Below are positions 2,437 through 58,819 of a stretch of 64,000 nt of DNA, one piece after another. Source of the DNA: Epiperipatus broadwayi (taxonomy: Eukaryota > Animalia > Onychophora); NCBI GenBank assembly GCA_028023455.1, contig JAQFVV010000007.1, positions 15,748,001 to 15,812,000 of the forward strand, written 5' to 3'. The translations under genes were made by a program, and so were the position numbers. Under the pieces are notes generated by a model. That model worked only from the letters and a program-made list of their open reading frames with translations, was not told the DNA's origin and ran no database searches. How positions within the stretch are numbered: the first letter of the stretch is position 1; every line of letters begins with the position of its first letter.

Positions 2437-2612
2437 GGACTATTTCCATCATCTAAAGAAAAATTTAACTTTTTAAAAATCTTCCAATGACATTCAACTG
2501 TTAGTAATAGCATACAGGTTAGTATATGTACAACATCTTGAGAGATTACTTTCCTCTCATCTTCAAGTGCTGCTGGCCTTACCAGTGGCAATACTAGCAT
2601 TGGAATCGAATT
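2437..2612 (-). mobile_element. Family D SINE-like element (tRNA-like head plus hammerhead), 5'-truncated copy
   Basis: Reverse complement of the adjacent 2625-2895 copy, from the B-box (ttcgattcc) to the gatgatggaaatagt end. HHR-like segment on the minus strand at 2526-2570: TTGAAGA tgagag-gaaagtaat-ctctca AGAT GTT GTA. Confidence 0.75.
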
Positions 2613-2624
2613 TTAAGATAAATG

Positions 2625-2895
2625 CTCTAAGGATGCCTCATTTGGTTAGAGTGTTACCTTAAAATTCAATATTCAAGGATCTATATCCAGGTTCGATTCC
2701 CATGCTGGTACTACCAATGATCAGACTAGCAACACCTGAAGAAAAGAGAATGATACCTCTTCGAACTTTGTGTATATATACTAACCTGTGGGCTATTAGT
2801 AACAGTTTAATGCAATTGGAAGATTTAAATAAAGTTAAATTTTTCTAAAGACATTCAATAATTAATATTAGATGATGGAAATAGTTCAATATATA
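2625..2895 (+). mobile_element. Family D SINE-like element (tRNA-like head plus hammerhead)
   Basis: A-box-like tcatttggttagagtg (~2638-2653), B-box ggttcgattccc (2690-2701), then acac CTGAAGA a-aagag-aatgatac-ctctt-c GAAC ttt gtgt (2732-2773). Homologous to 47755-48055, 48452-48750 and 56865-57090. Confidence 0.8.
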
Positions 2896-2989
2896 AATAC
2901 AACCGTATGGTTATTTGTTTGTACATTCCAATTGGTAGATTCAGTGCAATAATTCTATTCAGATGAACAAAGTAAGACTTTTTTTATTA

Positions 2990-11287: not shown

Positions 11288-11490
11288 CAGTAGCGCCACT
11301 CAATGCAAGCCAGAGTAATCAATGGATGCAGAAAAGGCTTCTCACTGATGAAATCCACAAGCTAGAAACTAGTCTGCAGATATTGGATGAGTAAGCACTA
11401 GATAGAAATTTTATACACAAACCTCCCTGTATCCATTGATTACTCTGATTTGCATGGAATTGCACTACTATATGGAGAGTGTAGCCTTTG
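11288..11490 (+). mobile_element. Family A hammerhead element with an inverted 5' arm
   Basis: HHR tctca CTGATGA aatc-cacaa-gcta GAAAC ta GTC^ tgcaga (11340-11380). Arm 11288-11331 is the reverse complement of 11427-11470. Homologous to 42607-42760 and to the 35 kb copies. Confidence 0.75.
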
Positions 11491-30008: not shown

Positions 30009-31271
30009 ATGATAAAGATTTTTCCCAATTATACAATTATGACAGACAAAAATAAAACATGGCCCTTAATCCCAGGAGGCTGTAAAGTCACCAACCAAGG
30101 CAGCGGTTGGTGGCCGAAGGCGGAGGGTGCTAAGAATACCCTGGAGGCGGACCCAGGCTGCCATTTGATGACGACTTTTTATTTAGGTACTTACAACTGC
30201 AGATCACTTTCAAGTGAAGGAAGATTGCAAGAATTAGAAGAAGAACTCTCTTATATTAAATGGGATATTATTGGACTTTGTGAAGTTAGAAGAAAAGGTG
30301 AAGAGACAATTGATTTAAAAAGTGGACATATGCTCTACTATAAAGGCACAAATATTGGAAATACAAGTGGAGTAGGATTCATTATAAATAAAAAGTGGAA
30401 GAACAATATTGTGGAGATTGATGGTGTATCAGACAGAGTGGCAAGATTAGTTATACAACTTAATAGCAGATATCAAATGCAGATAATTCAGGTTTATGCC
30501 CCAACAAGTTCTCACAGTGATGAAGTAGTAGAAGATTTTTATATGGATGTACAAAAGGCTTTTGATCAGAGTAAACAACATTTTAAAATTGTTATGGGAG
30601 ATTTTAATGCTAGAATTGGTAAACAAATGAAAGATGAAAGTGTTGTAGGTAATTTTGGTTATGGTAATAGAAATGAGAGAGGACATAGACTTGTGGAGTT
30701 TGCAGAGAAGGAAAAACTTTATATTATGAATTCTTTTTTTGAGAAAAATGTTAGAAGGAAATGGACATGGAAGCATCCAAATGAAGGTACAGCAGAATTG
30801 GATTATATTTTGACTAACAGGAAATACATATTTCAAGATTGTAATGTTCTTAATAAATTTAACACAGGAAGTGATCATCGATTAGTAAGGGGTAAGATAC
30901 ATGTTAATGTAAAACTAGAGAGACAAAAATTATTAAGAAAAACTATATTTACAGTTGATATTCCTAATCTTCAGAAACATTCTAATGAATTTAAATTAGA
31001 ACTTACAAATCGGTTTCAAGTATTAGTAGATTTTGAACATGATTCAGATTTGAATGAAATTAATATGAAAATAACTGATACACTTTTAAAAACTGCAACA
31101 AAGATAGCTGGTAGAAAAAAGCAGCAATTGACTAATAAAATTTCTACTGAGACTAGAGAACTTATGAAGAAAAGAAGGAATATGAAGATATGCAAGAATG
31201 ATGCATTAAAAAGAATTGAATATCTCGAATTTTGTAAAATGGTGTGGAAAAGAGTTGAAAATGATATATAA
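30009..31271 (+). CDS. RTE ORF N-terminal part: apurinic-like endonuclease
   Basis: Motifs [37 protein letters not shown] and SDHRLV. Ends at a stop created by a 2-bp insertion near 31267. Confidence 0.93.
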
Positions 31272-31417
31272 GAAAGTATAACTGTGAACTAGCAAGAAAA
31301 GCTGTAGAAGAAAATAAAAGTCTTAAGAATGTAAAACAACATTTTGGTATTGGTAGGAAATTTATATCTGCAATAAGGAAAAAAGATGGAATTATTACTA
31401 AAAAGAGGGATGACATT

Positions 31418-32998
31418 ATGAAATTGGTAGAAGATTTTTATCAAGAATTATATAGTAATAAAGAACAAGTACCTCCTATATCTATTACATCTTCCGAATT
31501 GCCCAGAATTTTAAATGAAGAAGTGAGAAATGCAATTAAATGTATGAAGAAAGGAAAGGCTCCAGGTAATGATGGAATTATAATTGATATATTAAAAGAA
31601 GCAGGTGAAGAAACAGAAAAAATATTAGCAAAGTTATATACCAAATGTCTAAATGATAAAGATGTACCGGATGATTGGAAGAATGCAGTAATAATATTAA
31701 TATTTAAAAAAGGTGATAAAGAAGATATTAGAAATTACAGACCTATCAGCCTTTTATCAGTTTTATATAAAATTTTTACCAAGATAATTACAACTCGTCT
31801 ACAGAGAACCTTGGATTTTCACCAACCAAGAGAACAAGCTGGATTTAAAAGTGGTTTTAGTACAGTAGATCATATTCAAGTATTGAGAGAAGTTATAGAA
31901 AGGACAAATGAATATGAGTTGTCATTATGTTTTGGATTTGTAGATTATGAAAAGGCATTTGATTCTATAAACATTTCTTCAGTGATTAAAGCATTGGATC
32001 ATCAAGGTATAGATCCAGGATATTGTCATATTTTAAAGAATATTTATAAAAATGCAACAGCAACAATTAGATTACATAATGATACTGGAAAAATCAACAT
32101 TGAGAAAGGTGTAAGACAAGATGACTCCATATCTCCAAAACTCTTTACAGCAGTGCTACAAGAAGTATTTTGTGGATTAAAATGGGAAACTAAAGGAGTG
32201 AAAGTAAATGGAGATTATTTAAGTCATTTAGATTTCGCAGATGATGTAGTTGTTTTTGCAAATAATGCTTCCGAGCTGCAGGAAATGTTGCAGAAGTTGT
32301 CAGGTGAAAGTGGGAAAGTGGGACTAAAGATAAATGTTAAAAAGACTAAAGTAATGTTTAATCGATTTGCTCAAAATATGAAAATAAAGATTGATTATGA
32401 TGAATTGGAAGAAGTTAAGAGTTACAAATACCTTGGTCAGATTATTAATGCAGATGGAAACATAATGGAGGAAATTAATCATAGAATTAAACTTGGTTGG
32501 AGTGCTTTTGGTAGAAATAACTTGATATTAAAAGGAAATATGCCTATGTGTTTGAAAAGAAAGGTTTTTAATAAATGTGTTTTACCAGTTCTTACTTATG
32601 GATCTGAGACTTGGACACTTAATAGAAGATCAATACAGAGACTTCAGACCACTCAAAGAAGTATGGAGAGATGTATGTTGGGAGTAACAAGAAGAGACCG
32701 AAAACGCAATGTATGGGTAAGAGAACAAACAGGTGTTACTGACCTCATTGAAAAAATTAAAAGATTGAAGTGGAGTTGGGCTGGACATATTGCTAGAAGA
32801 GATGATAATAGATGGACAATTGAAATTTTAAACTGGATTCCAAGAGATTGTAAAAGACCCAGAAGGAGACCACATGTAAGATGGATGGATGAAATAAGAA
32901 AATGTGTAGGGGTGATGTGGAGAAGAGAAGCTAAAGATCGGAGAAGATGGATTAAACTTGGAGAGACCTTCATCCTGCAGTGGATTGATAATGGTTGA
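31418..32998 (+). CDS. RTE ORF C-terminal part: reverse transcriptase
   Basis: Motifs [30 protein letters not shown](D)[26 protein letters not shown] and WSWAGHIAR. The frame is open upstream to DIRKYN, so it was originally one ORF with 30009-31271. Confidence 0.95.
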
Positions 32999-42559: not shown

Positions 42560-42760
42560 TTGCATTAGATTTTAAGGTCTAGATGCAGTGATCTTAGATC
42601 CAAGACTCATCACTGATGAAAGCCACAAACTAGAAACTAGTCTATGGATATTGGATGGCTAGGCATTACATAGGGATTTTATACACTAATCATCTTGCAT
42701 CCATTGATTACCAAGGTTTGCACTAGATGGCACTATTATATGGAGAGTTGGCTACTGTTT
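42560..42760 (+). mobile_element. Family A hammerhead element
   Basis: catca CTGATGA aagc-cacaa-acta GAAAC ta GTC^ tatgg (42608-42647). About 110 nt downstream aligns with 11375-11490. Confidence 0.75.
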
Positions 42761-47065: not shown

Positions 47066-47754
47066 TAGTACATAATAGCAATAGAAAAATTTAATATATA
47101 TATATTATTATTTGCCTAATTACTTTGTACAACTAAATTTGTACTTTTTTTGTTTTGGGGTTTTTTTTTTTTTTTGTAACCGTTATTTTTTAGATGATGA
47201 TGATGATGATGATAATAATAATAATTATTATTATTATTTGTACAAGTAAATTTGTATTTTTGTTTTTCCTCATTTATTTAATTAAATATCTAAATTTTTT
47301 AGACATCTGTCAATCATAGTATCATTTGTGAAAAAAGTATACATATTTTATTTTTATTTAATTTCGTTTATATACCATTTAATCCTTTTTTGTTTTTCAT
47401 TTGTAAACAAACAAAACAAAAATCATATTCCAAAACATTTACATCATTTATTACTTGGTATTTTTAGTAGTGGTCAGATAATGCCTTACCAGTTTTTGAC
47501 ATTTGTAGATCAAATTGCTGTAATATACATATATGACTAACAAACACATTACAGAATAGAAAAGACTAATAATTTAGATCTTCCACAAGACAATAATACA
47601 TTTCATGCATTAATTGGATTGCCATTAAAAAGTGTCAAATATAAATTGTTTTTCACAGGATATATATATGATGTTAACTGATTGCTACCATGTCATATCT
47701 TTCTGTAGGATACAGACACATTTTGGTTACACTTAATTTCATTGGATAAAAAAA

Positions 47755-48055
47755 TTTCACTATAGTGTAATATGTTGAACTATTTCCATCATCTAGCATT
47801 AAATGTTGAATGTGTAAAAAATTTTAAACTTTATTCAAACTTTTCAAATACAACCAATTGTGTTAGTAATAACACAGATAGATAACCCAGTTTAATAGAT
47901 TACACAACATTTCAAGTGATATTATTCTCCACTCTTCTTCAGGTATCGCTGGCCTGACCAGTGACAATATTAGCATAAGAGTCAAACTTACACCTTTAAA
48001 ATCTTGAATATTGAATTTTAAGGTAAGGATCTAACCAATTGAGCTATTCTGTCCA
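47755..48055 (-). mobile_element. Family D SINE-like element (tRNA-like head plus hammerhead)
   Basis: Minus strand tagctcaattggttaga (A box, 48030-48046), then atac CTGAAGA ag-agtgg-agaataata-tcact-t GAAA TG TT^ gtgt (47901-47946). Confidence 0.82.
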
Positions 48056-48451
48056 AGGCAAGTCAGGAGAAATTTTATATGACTTATCTATGAGGGTTAA
48101 TTCAAATCCTCCTGATTGATACCTCCAAAAAATTTTTAAAAATATTTTTCCTAAGTGAATGATTAATTAAAGGCTTCCAGACATTGTGTATTGCTACACT
48201 GGGTTGACATGTAGGATTATTTTCCACCATTACATGAGTAGCTTCTTTGAATTTTTTTCTTTGCATCTTTTTATCCCTATTCAAAGAAGAAAATTCAAAA
48301 CTGCTGCTCATATGACAATCACAAGTAATTCTATAAGTCAACCCATTGCTTTTAGAATTAAGTATTTAAAAAAAAAAATCAAGAAATCAAGAGGCTATGG
48401 ATTAACCTTCATAGATAAGTATATGAAATTTTTACTTACTGTTGCCATTGA

Positions 48452-48750
48452 CTGAATAGCTAAGTTGATTAGATCCTTGTCTTAAAATTCAATATTCAAG
48501 AATCTAAAGGTGTAAGTTGAATTCCTATGCTAATGTTGTCACCGGTTTAGGTCAGCAACATTTGAAGAAGTGCAGAGAATAATAACTGTCAAAATGTTGT
48601 GTGTAATCTACTAACCTATATATTGTCTATTTGTGTGTTATTACTAACAGTTGTTTGTATTCAAAAAGTTTAAATAAAGTTTAATATTTTTTTTAGACAC
48701 TCACCACTTAATGGTGTATGATGGAAATAGTATAACATCACATCTAATAT
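48452..48750 (+). mobile_element. Family D SINE-like element, right member of a head-to-head pair
   Basis: gaatagctaagttgattaga...; TTGAAGA agt-gcag-agaataataa-ctgt-c AAAA TG TT gtgt (48562-48602). Reverse complement of 47755-48055. Confidence 0.82.
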
Positions 48751-48855
48751 ACTATTATCAGTAACTTTCAGGCAAATATTCATTGTGGTGAGTTGAAAAG
48801 CTAAATTCATCACATCGCAAATTAAAATGCTCATGTGTTAATATATGTATATTCA

Positions 48856-49089
48856 AAATAAACAAGTTTAATAAAATATATACTAGAGTGAATAAACCCA
48901 ATTTTGTACAGATGTGCCCAGCTACAATATGACAAATAAACAAGTTTAATAAAATATATACTAGAGTGAATAAACCCAATTTTGTACAGATGTGCCCAGC
49001 TACAATATGACAAATAAACAAGTTTAATAAAATATATACTAGAGTGAATAAACCCAATTTTGTACAGATGTGCCCAGCTACAATATGAC
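48856..49089. repeat. Three perfect tandem copies of a 78-bp unit
   Basis: Units start at 48856, 48934 and 49012 and are identical; this explains the repetitive ORFs 48758-49102 and 48831-49091. Confidence 0.97.
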
Positions 49090-54800: not shown

Positions 54801-55814
54801 AAACTTAAATTATAAAGCATTGTAAATAATTACTAACTACTATAAGATGCACCTTAAAAGCAGTTGATTATTAAAACAATCACATTAGATATGCATAATA
54901 TATTTCTTCACTCTTGAGCTAACTCTGCAAACAAGGGACAAGTCATTGATCTCTAAGTAATAAGATAAACTTTTATGGCTGTCTCTGGCAACTTAAATGT
55001 CTTTTATCAGAAAACCTTGTTATAAAAATGGCTACTTAAGCCAGAGACTATTTTTTACGCTGTCATCTGGTGTCTATTTATTTTTTAATATTCAAAAAAT
55101 GATTTTAGAATGAATATTGAAATCACTATTTAAACTGCATTAAATCCTGCTATAAAAAATGGCTATTTAAATAGGAAACTAGTCATAGAATCTTGTCGCC
55201 CCCCCCCCCAAGTTTATTAGACTTTGAATTTACATGTTTACATACAGTGATAAACTAAATTTATCTATGATATACAATGATATACTTATGATTTTATTAA
55301 GTACACTATGTTATAACCAAATGGTGAATAATAATAGTCATTTTCATCAGTCACCCCAATCCATTCAATGATTGACTCTTGACCATCGACCCATGTCACA
55401 ATACCCTTAAGAACCCAAGAAGGGACTTATTTCTTGTTCAGACCTGGATTCCAATGACCAAAATTCCCAAAGACTTACAAGTCTTGGTTTGTGTGGCATT
55501 TAGAGCCTATTAACACATTTAATGCTCATTTTTTTCATCATGACTAAGTTACCTACTGTAAAGTTTAATTATGTAATAGATGCTTTATGATAGTGTTTAA
55601 TTAATTTCTATATGTGCTAAAACAGCAATACATAGGCTTGGGGAGTCTTGGGAGTCATAAAATACATTCTTAATACTCAATTAGTTTAAATGTGGTATGG
55701 AAGTCACTATTGTCTAATTTAAAAATAATGTAATCTTAAGTTTTTAGGCTGATTACATATTGTTTAAAAATTTTTTAATATTTTTTTTTCCATTCTTTAA
55801 CCAAAATAGAACAA

Positions 55815-55912
55815 GTTGGTGGTCGAGAGGTCAGCACAGCAGCCTTGCAAGCAGTTGTCCCGGTTTAGCGGGTTCGCTTCCTGGCCAATGCTATGACACA
55901 TGAAAAAAAAAA
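55815..55912 (+). mobile_element. tRNA(Ala-like)-derived SINE, family E, with poly(A) and a 12-bp TSD
   Basis: TSD aaaatagaacaa at 55803-55814 and 55913-55924; homologous to 33240-33352. Confidence 0.85.
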
Positions 55913-56864
55913 AAAATAGAACAAATGGGTTTTACTAATTACTTTTAAAATGCTTGAAATGAAAAACATTGAATAAAGGTATTATTAACATTATTTTAAT
56001 CTATTATTTTCAAATAACTTAACCATATTTCAAACATAAATTTTTCTACCCCCAACTATAATTACATATCGTGGAAAGTCCTATATTTGAAATAACGTTT
56101 TAAAAAATAAAACAGTGAAATTTAATCTGATTGTGTAAAAGTTTTAATTAAAGAAATATGTATCTCAATGATGTAAGAGGCTTTATTGAATGTAAATGTT
56201 AAAATGAACTAATAATAACAAAAATAGCTACTTACAAATAAGTATTTTCCACCCCCACCCCCCAATTCTAAACATGAGTTTTGCGATGACTACACACCCA
56301 CGTAGAGAACATACTTGTCCATTTTTCTTTTACTCGATATTTTAAACAGTAAATTATTTTAAGTAGTGATAAGGAATCACATGTCACGTGCAAATATTTA
56401 TTTTAGTATCCAATTATGTAGCTTCTAGAGCCGATCTAAAACATAAGCACTAGAATAAGTTATTAAGAAATAACGTTTTTCAGAGGTTTTTTAAACCTAG
56501 CATTATTCGATTGAGTTTGTATGTAGAGTACTAGAAATATATAGATACCATAGAAGAATCACCATTAATTTATAGGTTTTTAAAATTATTAGTCTAAATT
56601 TGCAGTTGTAATTTTCTATGAGATTATCTTCCCAAAAGCAAGTAGAGGTAAAGAGATTATTGATATACCCAATTACTGTCATAGGTTGATTATTCTATTT
56701 TATCATCATCATATTTAGAGTTACATTTGTATTGGCTTACTTTTACACATTGTACCATAAAATTTTACTATTTTTTTTACGATATTATCTGCCAAAAGAG
56801 GAAATGGAATAGAAAAAATGAAATCTTATTGCTGCAGTACACATATATGTAATTATATGTTAGA

Positions 56865-57090
56865 CTATTTCCATTATCTAAAATTAATTGTTAAATATCT
56901 TCAGACATATTCAAACTAATTTAAATCTGAAATATATTTAGCTATTAGTAGTAACATACAGAATAGTATCTAACATCTTTCTAGCAGTATTACTCTCAAC
57001 TCTTTTTCAAATGTTGATAGTCTGATCAGTGACAATACTAGCATGAGAGTCGAACCTATGACCTTTTAGATTTGTGAATAATGAATTTAA
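56865..57090 (-). mobile_element. Family D SINE-like element, degenerate
   Basis: B-box ggttcgactctc on the minus strand (~57046-57058), family D body and end motif; the hammerhead is decayed. Confidence 0.7.
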
Positions 57091-58819
57091 GGGCTATCAA
57101 AAATATGCATAGTAAAATGAATAAAATTTTAATATTAAATTGAAAAAAAAAAAATCATTTAAATCAAAAAATCATTTCATTTTAAAATATATTTTAAAAT
57201 ACTTGTGCATAAAATTGCTATATACTATAACTTAAATATTTTACTTTGTAATATTTAAGTTGAAGAAAAATATAAATGAGAAACAAAACTATCATTTCTT
57301 TACTTCAGTGTGTGAAATCAAAGTAAAGTTTATAGCTATTGGAATTTTGTAATTGGAATTTGTATTTTAAAATGCTATTGGTCAACTCGAATTAACTGTA
57401 AACAGCATGTTATTTTTTGGAATTGTTTGGTTTGTAAAAAGAAAAAGAAACTAAATATTATAGCTAATATGTTTTCTACAAATAATAGATTCATAATTTT
57501 ATTAATGATGATGATAACTTCTGTTATTTTTCTTAAAATTTTGAAGTATATTAATGAATTTAGGAAATAAACATAGTATTAGAATCTTTATACGAATTTT
57601 TTGATATTTTCCAATTGTTATTTAATTTCTTTTTACTTTTATTTATGTTAAAAGCTTCTTTGACGAGAAATAGATTGAATAAAACCTATTCAGCAAATGA
57701 TCCCAGGATCCACTTGTTGTGTAAAAATTATTAATAATAAACTATTCAAATTCATTGCACCTATATCAATATTTCCAATAAGTTCAACAACCATAGTTTA
57801 CTATTTTTAGCAAGATTTACAAAATATATATATATATATTGTAACAATACTAACCAATAAGGGAGTAAAAGCTTACTGTCATTGAACATTTGTTTCTAAT
57901 ACTGGAACATAAGTATTGATAATGTGAGTTTGGATGAATTGGGCACACAATACCACAATTATTTCATTACTGATTAATTTTTTGAAATTTTATGAACAGA
58001 AGATATCCTCAATGTTAAACCAGACAACGAATCCAATAGAGATTATTCTCCTTTCATTCTATTTGTGTTTTATAGACACTTGTAAACCATGTACCTATTC
58101 ATTTGAAACCCCCCCCCCCATGAATTTTGCTAAATGCAGCTACATCAATTTTAAACCTTGTTAGTTACTCAGTGCTATAAGTACTGTTTTATATTCAGGT
58201 CTTGAAGAGTCTCCACTGAGCAAATTTTTTACACATTAATGTGAGCCATTTATTAAGTAGATTTTGCAAAGCTGATGATTTTTACAATACCATTTCTAGG
58301 TCTCATATTTGTGAAGGACAGGGAATACTTAAATAGGATTTTATACATGTAGAATTATTTGCTGTATAGAAGTTGTAGTGTTTTGAAAAATGGCAGACAT
58401 TTTTGTGCACTCCAGAAAGAACTAGAATTTATTCGAGTTGTTGTCTTTAGATCGCATGCTGATAATAGGAATTAATTAATGTAATGGCGGACGATAATTC
58501 CAAGAGATATTTGCTGTTTGCAAATATTTCTATATATAAGACGTTACCTTATTGGACAATGATTAATTGTTGCAGTTGTCACTAAGCGATAAGAAGACTG
58601 GGTAACATCTATACAGGGCAGTAATTAGAGGACAACTCCAGTAGAGAGCAGTCACACAGTTTGAGTCAAGCAGTATTAGAGTAGACGTCGGTTTAACACC
58701 AGTGGAGATATCTCGTGTCAGTGCTGGTGGTTAATGACCAGCGCCCAGTGGAAATGTAGTCCACGGGTGTAGCTGAAAGAGCCCACAGAGATGGGGAGAC
58801 CGCAGTGGAGATATTGAGA

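Follow-up and report, generated by a model that had tools for sequence, protein, structure and literature searches.

We analysed a 64,000-nucleotide (nt) window of contig JAQFVV010000007.1 from the onychophoran Epiperipatus broadwayi, with the region at 2437–2895 as the subject of study. The window is AT-rich (23–36% G+C) and animal-like, carries an RTE retrotransposon with endonuclease and reverse transcriptase (RT) domains at 30009–32998, and contains five arms or copies of a repeat that we term family D, arranged as two head-to-head pairs (elements A and B) and one solo copy (copy C; Table 1). The region under study falls within element A. The original prediction had described it as a short interspersed nuclear element (SINE)-like element headed by a transfer RNA (tRNA) and bearing a minimal hammerhead ribozyme. 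The tRNA-derived module and the motif ~35 nt beyond it are both present, but that description overlooked an insertion footprint characteristic of Penelope-like elements (PLEs).

Table 1. Family D features, given in positions of the window.
Feature	Position	Strand	Evidence or composition
One-sided ~45-nt tail extension, element A	2375–2421	−	Only on the arm of the inverted truncated copy
Inverted 5'-truncated copy, element A	2422–2630	−	Inverted repeats I1–I3, self-BLAST, alignment A1
Broken hammerhead motif, inverted copy of element A	2528–2569	−	cac UUGAAGA U GAGAG...CUCUC AAGA UGUU GUA
Full-length copy, element A	2628–2903	+	Begins near tRNA position 1 (AAGGATGCCTCATTTGGTTAGAG), ~2628
tRNA-like module, plus copy of element A	2634–2700	+	D-arm/A box 2634–2651; B box GGTTCGATTCC 2690–2700
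Broken hammerhead motif, plus copy of element A	2733–2772	+	cac CUGAAGA A AAGAG...CUCUU C GAA C UUU GUG
T5 run in the sense strand, plus copy of element A	2840–2844	+	Sequence, alignment A1, loose end at 47813
Best-conserved block of the family, TTAGATGATGGAAATAGT	2868–2885	+	5 matches versus 0.26 expected
Element B, long-form head-to-head pair	47768–48783		Left arm (−) 47768–48255; right arm (+) 48256–48783
Complete-core hammerhead motif, left arm of element B	47902–47946	−	Descriptor match
Broken hammerhead motif, right arm of element B	48557–48603	+	UUGAAGA ... AAAA UGUU GUG
Copy C, solo and 5'-truncated	56849–57096	−	B box GGTTCGACTCT 57056–57046; motif UUGAAAA 57010–57004

Element A is a near-complete palindrome in which two copies stand head to head, one of them full-length and on the plus strand, the other inverted and 5'-truncated, and the arms meet with an overlap of 2–3 nt. 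This arrangement is recorded by three pairs of inverted repeats (2422–2456 with 2868–2902, 2452–2532 with 2771–2851 and 2554–2626 with 2676–2748) and by a self-BLAST alignment of 393 nt to the opposite strand at 72%. The start of the plus copy agrees with a loose-end consensus from other genomic copies (GCAGGATGGCTCAGTTGGTTAGAGCATTAC), and its tRNA-like module also includes an anticodon-loop-like CTTAAAA and a GGAT/ATCC hairpin. The inverted copy stops in a D-loop-like TAGAGC and has an internal deletion of ~30 nt in its tRNA-like part; the tail that extends it, read in sense orientation, aligns with the extension of the right arm of element B (...TTAAAATAYCATYATCA..AACYTTCAGGMAAATA). Each arm differs from the local consensus by 14–19%, and element A is thus old. 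With both hammerhead cores broken it is also dead, and the local copies add nothing functional in themselves.

The remaining copies define the unit. Aligned in sense orientation (alignment A1), the five arms can be compared over ~260 nt, each agreeing with the majority consensus at 79–87%. Element B is the larger pair, with 1,024 nt self-aligned at 70.5% by self-BLAST and a one-sided tail at 48738–48783 on its right arm. The 5' part of the unit is tRNA-like (TAGCTCAATTGGTTAGA ... GGTTCGATTCC) and is followed by ~35 nt with a small CUGG/CCAG hairpin; the middle reads yTGAAGA, an AG-rich strand, an AAUAAUA-like loop, a CT-rich strand and rAAA-TGTT-GTG; and the 3' part has a body marked by a pair of ACTAAC boxes, AATAAA and a run of T, and ends in TTAGATGATGGAAATAGT. 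This terminal block recurs at 2439–2456 (−), 47779–47793 (−), 48717–48731 (+) and 56864–56878 (−), with an agreement among the five arms of 0.97 compared with 0.81 overall. The related motifs that the original prediction listed at 2569–2528 (−), 47946–47902 (−) and 48557–48603 (+) are all there; together with that of the plus copy, the four prove to be arms of two head-to-head pairs, and a fifth copy, at 56849–57096 (−), had been missed.

One DNA run, from which the size of the family was gauged, and three small RNA-labelled runs, all consisting of assembled contigs, from which molecule ends cannot be mapped, were matched to positions 47500–49000 (1,501 letters) at a likeness of at least 80%. 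A total of 31,372 DNA contigs were placed on the 1.5 kb of the element B region. Word depth reaches 0.4–1.8 million on element B, compared with 30–150 on its flanks, which corresponds to roughly 10^4 copies of family D, with the proviso that depth is not copy number. The repeat boundaries lie at 47755 and about 48780. Within them, depth declines stepwise toward the 5' side and falls ~17-fold exactly at the tRNA-like 5' end (from 618,000 to 36,000 at 48060/48061), with a drop from 193,000 to 39,000 on the other arm, which suggests that most copies begin at the tRNA-like end; element B itself is a minority long form. Two further scans returned unrelated sequences only: a 17-mer scan of viral contigs for more copies gave 39 matches, all unrelated and GC-rich, and a flank-anchored pattern in metagenome contigs gave one, unrelated and 63.5% GC. 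The centre of element B (48061–48446), which covers the ~190 nt preceding either tRNA-like part and has an A11 run at 48368–48378, is itself repeated genome-wide (depth 6,000–130,000, compared with ~35 for single copy), and other contigs connect it to the tRNA-like part; it may represent the 5' portion of a long form or a fragment of another repeat.

The geometry of the insertions is informative about how they arose. In both elements A and B the sense strands point outward, and the ~45-nt extension beyond the common end is found only on the left arm of A and the right arm of B, the partner arms being without it. The depth boundaries of element B agree with this one-sided tail. In other genomic copies, arm-to-arm joints connect 48026 or 48037 to 48480–48482, showing that unequal head-to-head junctions arise repeatedly within the tRNA-like part. 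PLE insertions have been described as leaving an inverted, 5'-truncated copy beside the 5' end and a tail of 30–40 base pairs (bp) at one end (PMC8557442), for which the explanation given is that both DNA strands are cleaved and extended and that reverse transcription initiates internally, at two sites (PMC11167929). Elements A and B, two of the three insertions in the window, show the same inverted-pair-plus-tail footprint, with an inverted 5'-truncated copy at the 5' end and a tail on one side, pointing to a PLE as the mobilising partner.

Two near-complete palindromes with identical outer ends (ACTATTTCCATCATC / GATGATGGAAATAGT) could also suggest a fold-back or miniature inverted-repeat (MITE)-like DNA transposon with long terminal inverted repeats, in which the tRNA-like and hammerhead-like pieces would be there by chance or by hitch-hiking; in line with this, Rfam matches the elements only as long hairpins, through microRNA-precursor models that reflect the palindromes. 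We regard this as highly improbable. Copy C consists of one arm by itself and shares the 3' end, the arms of element A are unequal, one being full length and the other truncated, and the inner junctions differ between A and B. Arms within one element (70–72%) are no more alike than arms of different elements (67–71%), and both the one-sided extension and the stepwise fall of depth toward the 5' side run counter to a transposon bounded by its inverted repeats.

Two features of the family's ends stand beside this footprint. Past the common 3' end (47768/47770), the sequence of other genomic copies runs on in two ways, as …AACATAT-AATTACAATTAAAATATCATTATT… and as …AACA-TCACATCTAATATATCATTATT…, which recalls the two adjacent start sites of reverse transcription described for a PLE in vitro. 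Within the tRNA module, truncated 5' ends (2630, 57096) and head-to-head junctions accumulate between the D-loop and the anticodon-like part, possibly because reverse transcription stops there, at a structure or a modified base, or because the template is switched at the self-complementary CCTTAAAATTC...GAATTTTAAGG. A candidate target-site duplication at both ends of element B (TTCACTATAGTG / TTCATTGTGGTG, differing by transitions only) was not significant and was set aside.

The second line of evidence is the hammerhead motif. In the plus copy of element A, CTGAAGA at 2736–2742 lies 35 nt after the B box and is followed by aagag/ctctt and CGAAC, as first described; the 5' core is intact, and the 3' core has an inserted C and the change A15.1>C. 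The inverted copy has the defects C3>U and GAAA>AAGA. Across the five copies the 3' core reads CGAAC-TTTGTG, AAGA-TGTTGTA, AAAA-TGTTGTG, GAAA-TGTTGTG and GAAAGATGTTAG, so that the sequence of the family at the cleavage side is GAAA-UG-UU^GUG. Neither the consensus GAAA-CG-UU proposed earlier nor the stem III palindrome AACGUU that went with it occurs in any copy. The picture of an intact minimal hammerhead shared by the copies also had to be abandoned: CUGANGA and GAAA are present together in one of the five, at 47946–47902 (−), outside 2437–2895, and both copies within that region are broken.

The motif in the left arm of element B was examined with a minimal-hammerhead descriptor that demands a complete core (one additional base being allowed after A9), an anchored helix II of ≥4 bp, UH no more than 6 nt from GAAA and a helix I of ≥3 bp. 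Its matches are this motif and one other place in the window, with a mean of 0.03 matches per window in 200 dinucleotide shuffles. Scaled from these shuffles, the chance expectation for a full match in one strand of a ~300-nt consensus is about 1e-4, and a hammerhead present as a hitch-hiking accident is therefore unlikely. The motif comprises helix I AUAC/GUGU, CUGAAGA (47942–47936), an unpaired A (47935), helix II GAGUGG/UCACUU, GAAA (47913–47910), UG, U16.1 at 47907 and U17 at 47906, with the predicted cut at 47906/47905. Penelope-type minimal hammerheads lack helix III and combine a long helix II, with an unpaired nucleotide at its 5' end (between A9 and 10.1), and a short helix I of 4–5 bp (PMC4209133). 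The left arm of element B fits this type, with an unpaired base after A9, a helix II of 6 bp (two of them G.U), a helix I of 4 bp, no helix III and GAAA-UG-UU; the unpaired first base of stem II is also present in both copies of element A.

For the family at large, contig depth is 1.07 million in the bin that holds the intact motif (47908–47958). Among the best-supported 40 of 314 variant places, the only majority-letter differences in this bin are at 47945 and 47947, where they turn GCGAUAC into GCAACAC, just upstream of the core, and the loose-end consensus from other genomic copies reads GAAATGTTGTGCATATACTAACC. On both grounds, the family majority appears to keep an intact core. The hammerhead most likely came to family D by descent from a PLE pseudo-long-terminal-repeat (pseudo-LTR) module.

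An ordinary tRNA SINE moved by a long interspersed nuclear element (LINE), with a hammerhead-like string present by chance and inverted pairs arising from secondary rearrangement, is another candidate explanation. In its favour, an RTE encoding endonuclease and RT domains is present in the window, the tRNA-like boxes are genuine, and the motif is thermodynamically weak and lacks covariation support. This reading is nevertheless improbable in our estimation. Family D has no poly(A) or simple-repeat tail, and its 3' block has no similarity to the RTE region; the chance expectation for the motif and the inverted-pair-plus-tail footprint in two of three insertions are also hard to reconcile with it. 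A true poly(A) tRNA-SINE in the same window looks different and has clean duplications. This classical ~90-nt SINE, at 55812–55915 (+) and 33340–33240 (−), has a tRNA-like part with a B box (GGTTCGCTTCC / GGTTCGCCTCC), a poly(A) tail and well-defined target-site duplications (AATAGAACAA; ATACTGAATGCTTT); its appearance is that of a young, LINE-mobilised element, in contrast to family D.

Taken together, these data lead us to the reading, at a probability of about 0.7 for the whole, that family D is a very abundant, dispersed, non-coding and non-autonomous retroelement of ~280 nt, with a minority form ~190 nt longer at its 5' end, in which a tRNA-headed unit carries a Penelope-type minimal hammerhead and is inserted by a PLE enzyme. 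In RNA sense, the unit consists of a tRNA-derived module with A and B boxes, a ~35-nt spacer, and a Penelope-type minimal motif of hammerhead type I (CUGAAGA, a single unpaired base, helix II of 6 bp, GAAA, UG, UU^G and a helix I of 3–4 bp), followed by a ~175-nt body and the conserved 3' block. The RT/endonuclease of the PLE would extend both cut DNA strands and start reverse transcription inside the RNA, yielding head-to-head pairs of a copy and an inverted 5'-truncated copy with a ~45-nt tail on one side; 2375–2903 would be one such PLE-driven insertion. Of these elements of the reading, the data establish the family, its abundance, its architecture, the A and B boxes and one intact core, with a majority that appears to keep the core, while the PLE partner is inferred. 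The hammerhead, if active at all, would be weak and active only as a dimer, as published for such motifs.

Several results weigh against this reading. With regard to insertion, a similarity search within the window found no autonomous PLE sharing the 3' block, and the best target-site duplications of A, B and C (9–10 of 13 positions) equal those of random segment pairs from the window. With regard to the ribozyme, the core is broken in four of the five local copies, and the intactness of the majority core is inferred from the best-supported 40 of 314 variant places rather than read off. The 15.2/16.2 pair is a U/G wobble instead of the palindrome typical of PLE motifs, and the pair closing helix II is G.U (left arm of B) or A-U rather than G-C (G10.1-C11.1). 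No Rfam hammerhead model (Hammerhead_1, _3, _II, HH9 or HH10) matched at the gathering score or at E ≤ 10, in the whole window or in sub-searches of 0.5–1 kb, these models requiring the helix III that is absent from minimal PLE motifs. Stem II, held in the original prediction to vary between copies and yet to pair, shows no covariation signal: 35 of 120 strand permutations were as good as the true pairing, in a test that has little power with five copies. Pairing between AG-rich and CT-rich strands is promiscuous. The core is retained at 47 of 55 positions (85%), no different from the neutral average, as expected of dead copies. The minimum free energy (MFE) structure of the 55-nt domain in the left arm of element B does consist of helices I and II, but it is no more stable than shuffles (z = +0.33), and that of the 295-nt unit does not form the hammerhead. 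With regard to the tRNA-like head, ARAGORN called no tRNA at normal settings, giving only forced calls at -ps80/-ps70, and Rfam gave no tRNA match, even at E ≤ 10 on 0.5–1 kb. Finally, a run of T5–T8 lies ~45 nt before the conserved 3' block in four of five copies and in the contig consensus, which argues against a simple Pol III (RNA polymerase III) transcript, as it would stop Pol III.

Some further hammerhead-like sequences were noted or discarded. A type III topology, in which cleavage would fall upstream of CUGAAGA and the CUGG/CCAG hairpin would close helix I, was rejected by eye, helix III failing to pair. A second hammerhead in the tail of copy C (56904–56868 (−), CTGAAGA...GAAA-TAGTC-TA^) was likewise rejected: it rests on a single A>G change, and the family at this site reads CTAAAGA...GGAAATAGT, without G5. 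The match may be chance or a relic of an older, second hammerhead-like module in the 3' block. In the core of copy C (UUGAAAA, 57010–57004 (−)), C3>U and G8>A are both present, U3 being found in three of the five copies. Among the PLE hammerheads of Cercyon, U3-A8 is known as a covariation that keeps the core functional (PMC4209133); in copy C it may represent two independent GC>AT changes in a dead copy. Elsewhere in the window, three decayed copies of another hammerhead family (11345–11378 (+), 42613–42646 (+) and 35214–35181 (−)) read CTGATGA-aagccacaagctt-GAAAC-TA-GTC, with a Penelope-type palindromic ACUAGU helix III and no Rfam score; the presence of such remnants counts in favour of the PLE-type hammerhead reading.

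The A and B boxes support a tRNA origin of the head and are compatible with those first described. The B box is found at 2690–2701 (GGTTCGATTCC(C)) and is perfect (11/11) in the plus copy of element A. The A box is represented by a D-arm/A-box-like 18-mer at 2634–2651, 48046–48029 and 48457–48474 (1–3 mismatches), far above the shuffle mean of 0.11, as the B box too lies far above its shuffle expectation, and the contig consensus (GCAGGATGGCTCAGTTGGTTAGAGCATTAC, GGCTCAGTTGGTTAGAGC) has a perfect D stem. We take the source to be probably a tRNA with a long variable arm, such as tRNA-Leu(UAA), on account of the CTTAAAA, the wide spacing between the A and B boxes and the GGAT/ATCC hairpin. ARAGORN at lowered thresholds proposed a forced 97-nt 'tRNA-Lys' and one 'tRNA-Ile' on the consensus, neither of which is credible.

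Boxes at tRNA-like spacing invite the proposal that Pol III transcribes the unit from them and that hammerhead cleavage then releases a tRNA-like 5' fragment from the body. Most copies seem to begin at the tRNA 5' end, judging from the depth step and the plus copy of element A, and RNA-labelled bins covering the head and hammerhead are richer than those of the tail, relative to DNA, by 2.5-fold in run X5 and 12-fold in run X7, which comes from another species, with a flat profile in X6. All three RNA-labelled libraries cover the element and not its flanks, a pattern that trace DNA of a 10^4-copy repeat would also produce, so that this excess is a weak hint at most and does not establish transcription. 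The T5–T8 run and the ~190 nt upstream of the tRNA part in the long form both speak against the proposal, as does the publication record: PLE minimal hammerheads cleave poorly, and only as dimers (PMC4209133). Genomic copies, moreover, contain both sides of the predicted cut, so the RNA template for them had not been cut, which places a separation of head from body by cleavage outside the propagation route. Insertion of the PAc PLE in vitro does not need hammerhead cleavage (PMC11167929), in agreement with an uncut template here. On balance, transcription and cleavage of this kind seem doubtful.

The reading of family D as a PLE-inserted, tRNA-headed unit can be set against several known systems. 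Minimal type I hammerheads of PLEs were reportedly described by Lunse et al. in 2017, and Ferbeyre et al. (1998) and Laha et al. (2000) are said to have described the SINE-like schistosome elements Sm-alpha and Sj-alpha. Family D shares with the PLE minimal hammerheads (Cervera & de la Pena 2014, PMC4209133) the CUGANGA/GAAA core without helix III, the massive, heterogeneous and dispersed occurrence in an animal genome and a carrier with the PLE footprint. It differs in that its motif follows a tRNA-like module at a distance of ~35 nt, inside a non-coding unit of ~280 nt rather than in the pseudo-LTR of a coding PLE, in the U/G at 15.2/16.2 and in a helix II closing pair that is not G-C. Like Sm-alpha and Sj-alpha (PMC2770079), it is a tRNA-derived unit of ~300 nt with an internal hammerhead and a copy number above 10^4; the combination of a tRNA-derived SINE with a hammerhead in Sm-alpha, invoked in the original prediction, is as published (PMC2770079). 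Sm-alpha, however, has a canonical type I hammerhead, found by the thousand with the Rfam hammerhead sequence (PMC2770079), whereas family D has the minimal PLE type with no Rfam match, occurs in head-to-head pairs and appears to derive from a different tRNA.

Animal non-LTR retrozymes (PMC7229834; preprint 10.64898/2026.07.22.740005) are likewise short, non-coding, hammerhead-bearing repeats, and have been proposed to be non-autonomous derivatives or partners of PLEs (Li et al. 2026, preprint 10.64898/2026.07.22.740005). What defines retrozymes is a head-to-tail tandem arrangement of units giving rise to circular RNAs, whereas family D is represented in the window by inverted pairs and one solo copy only, with no tandem units there; the term tRNA or tRNA-like is absent from the retrozyme paper (Cervera & de la Pena 2020, PMC7229834) and from the preprint (10.64898/2026.07.22.740005). 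With classical tRNA SINEs (SINE2), family D has in common the A and B boxes, tRNA 5' starts, 5' truncations and a high copy number, and it departs from them in having no poly(A) or LINE-derived tail, in its internal T5–T8 run and ribozyme motif, and in its inverted partner copies and one-sided tail. Judged from its sequence, a tRNA-headed SINE with a PLE-type hammerhead and a PLE footprint would be an uncommon, new combination of published kinds.

A more far-reaching proposal, which we consider tentative and rather unlikely, is that family D represents a distinct class of PLE-dependent SINEs in which a Pol III tRNA head is fused to a hammerhead-plus-3' module of a PLE, and that such SINEs are the unexplained carriers of the thousands of minimal hammerheads dispersed in animal genomes. 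The ribozyme would then be under selection, as U3 with A8 in copy C might suggest, and its cleavage would free a stable tRNA-like 5' fragment, in line with the 2.5–12-fold excess of the head.

Non-LTR retrozymes have been tied to PLEs only recently. If the reading favoured here is true, a family of ~10^4 copies would show that genuine SINE partners exist for PLEs as they do for LINEs, and family D would offer a natural system in which to distinguish the hammerhead as a ribozyme from the hammerhead as a handle recognised by the PLE enzyme.

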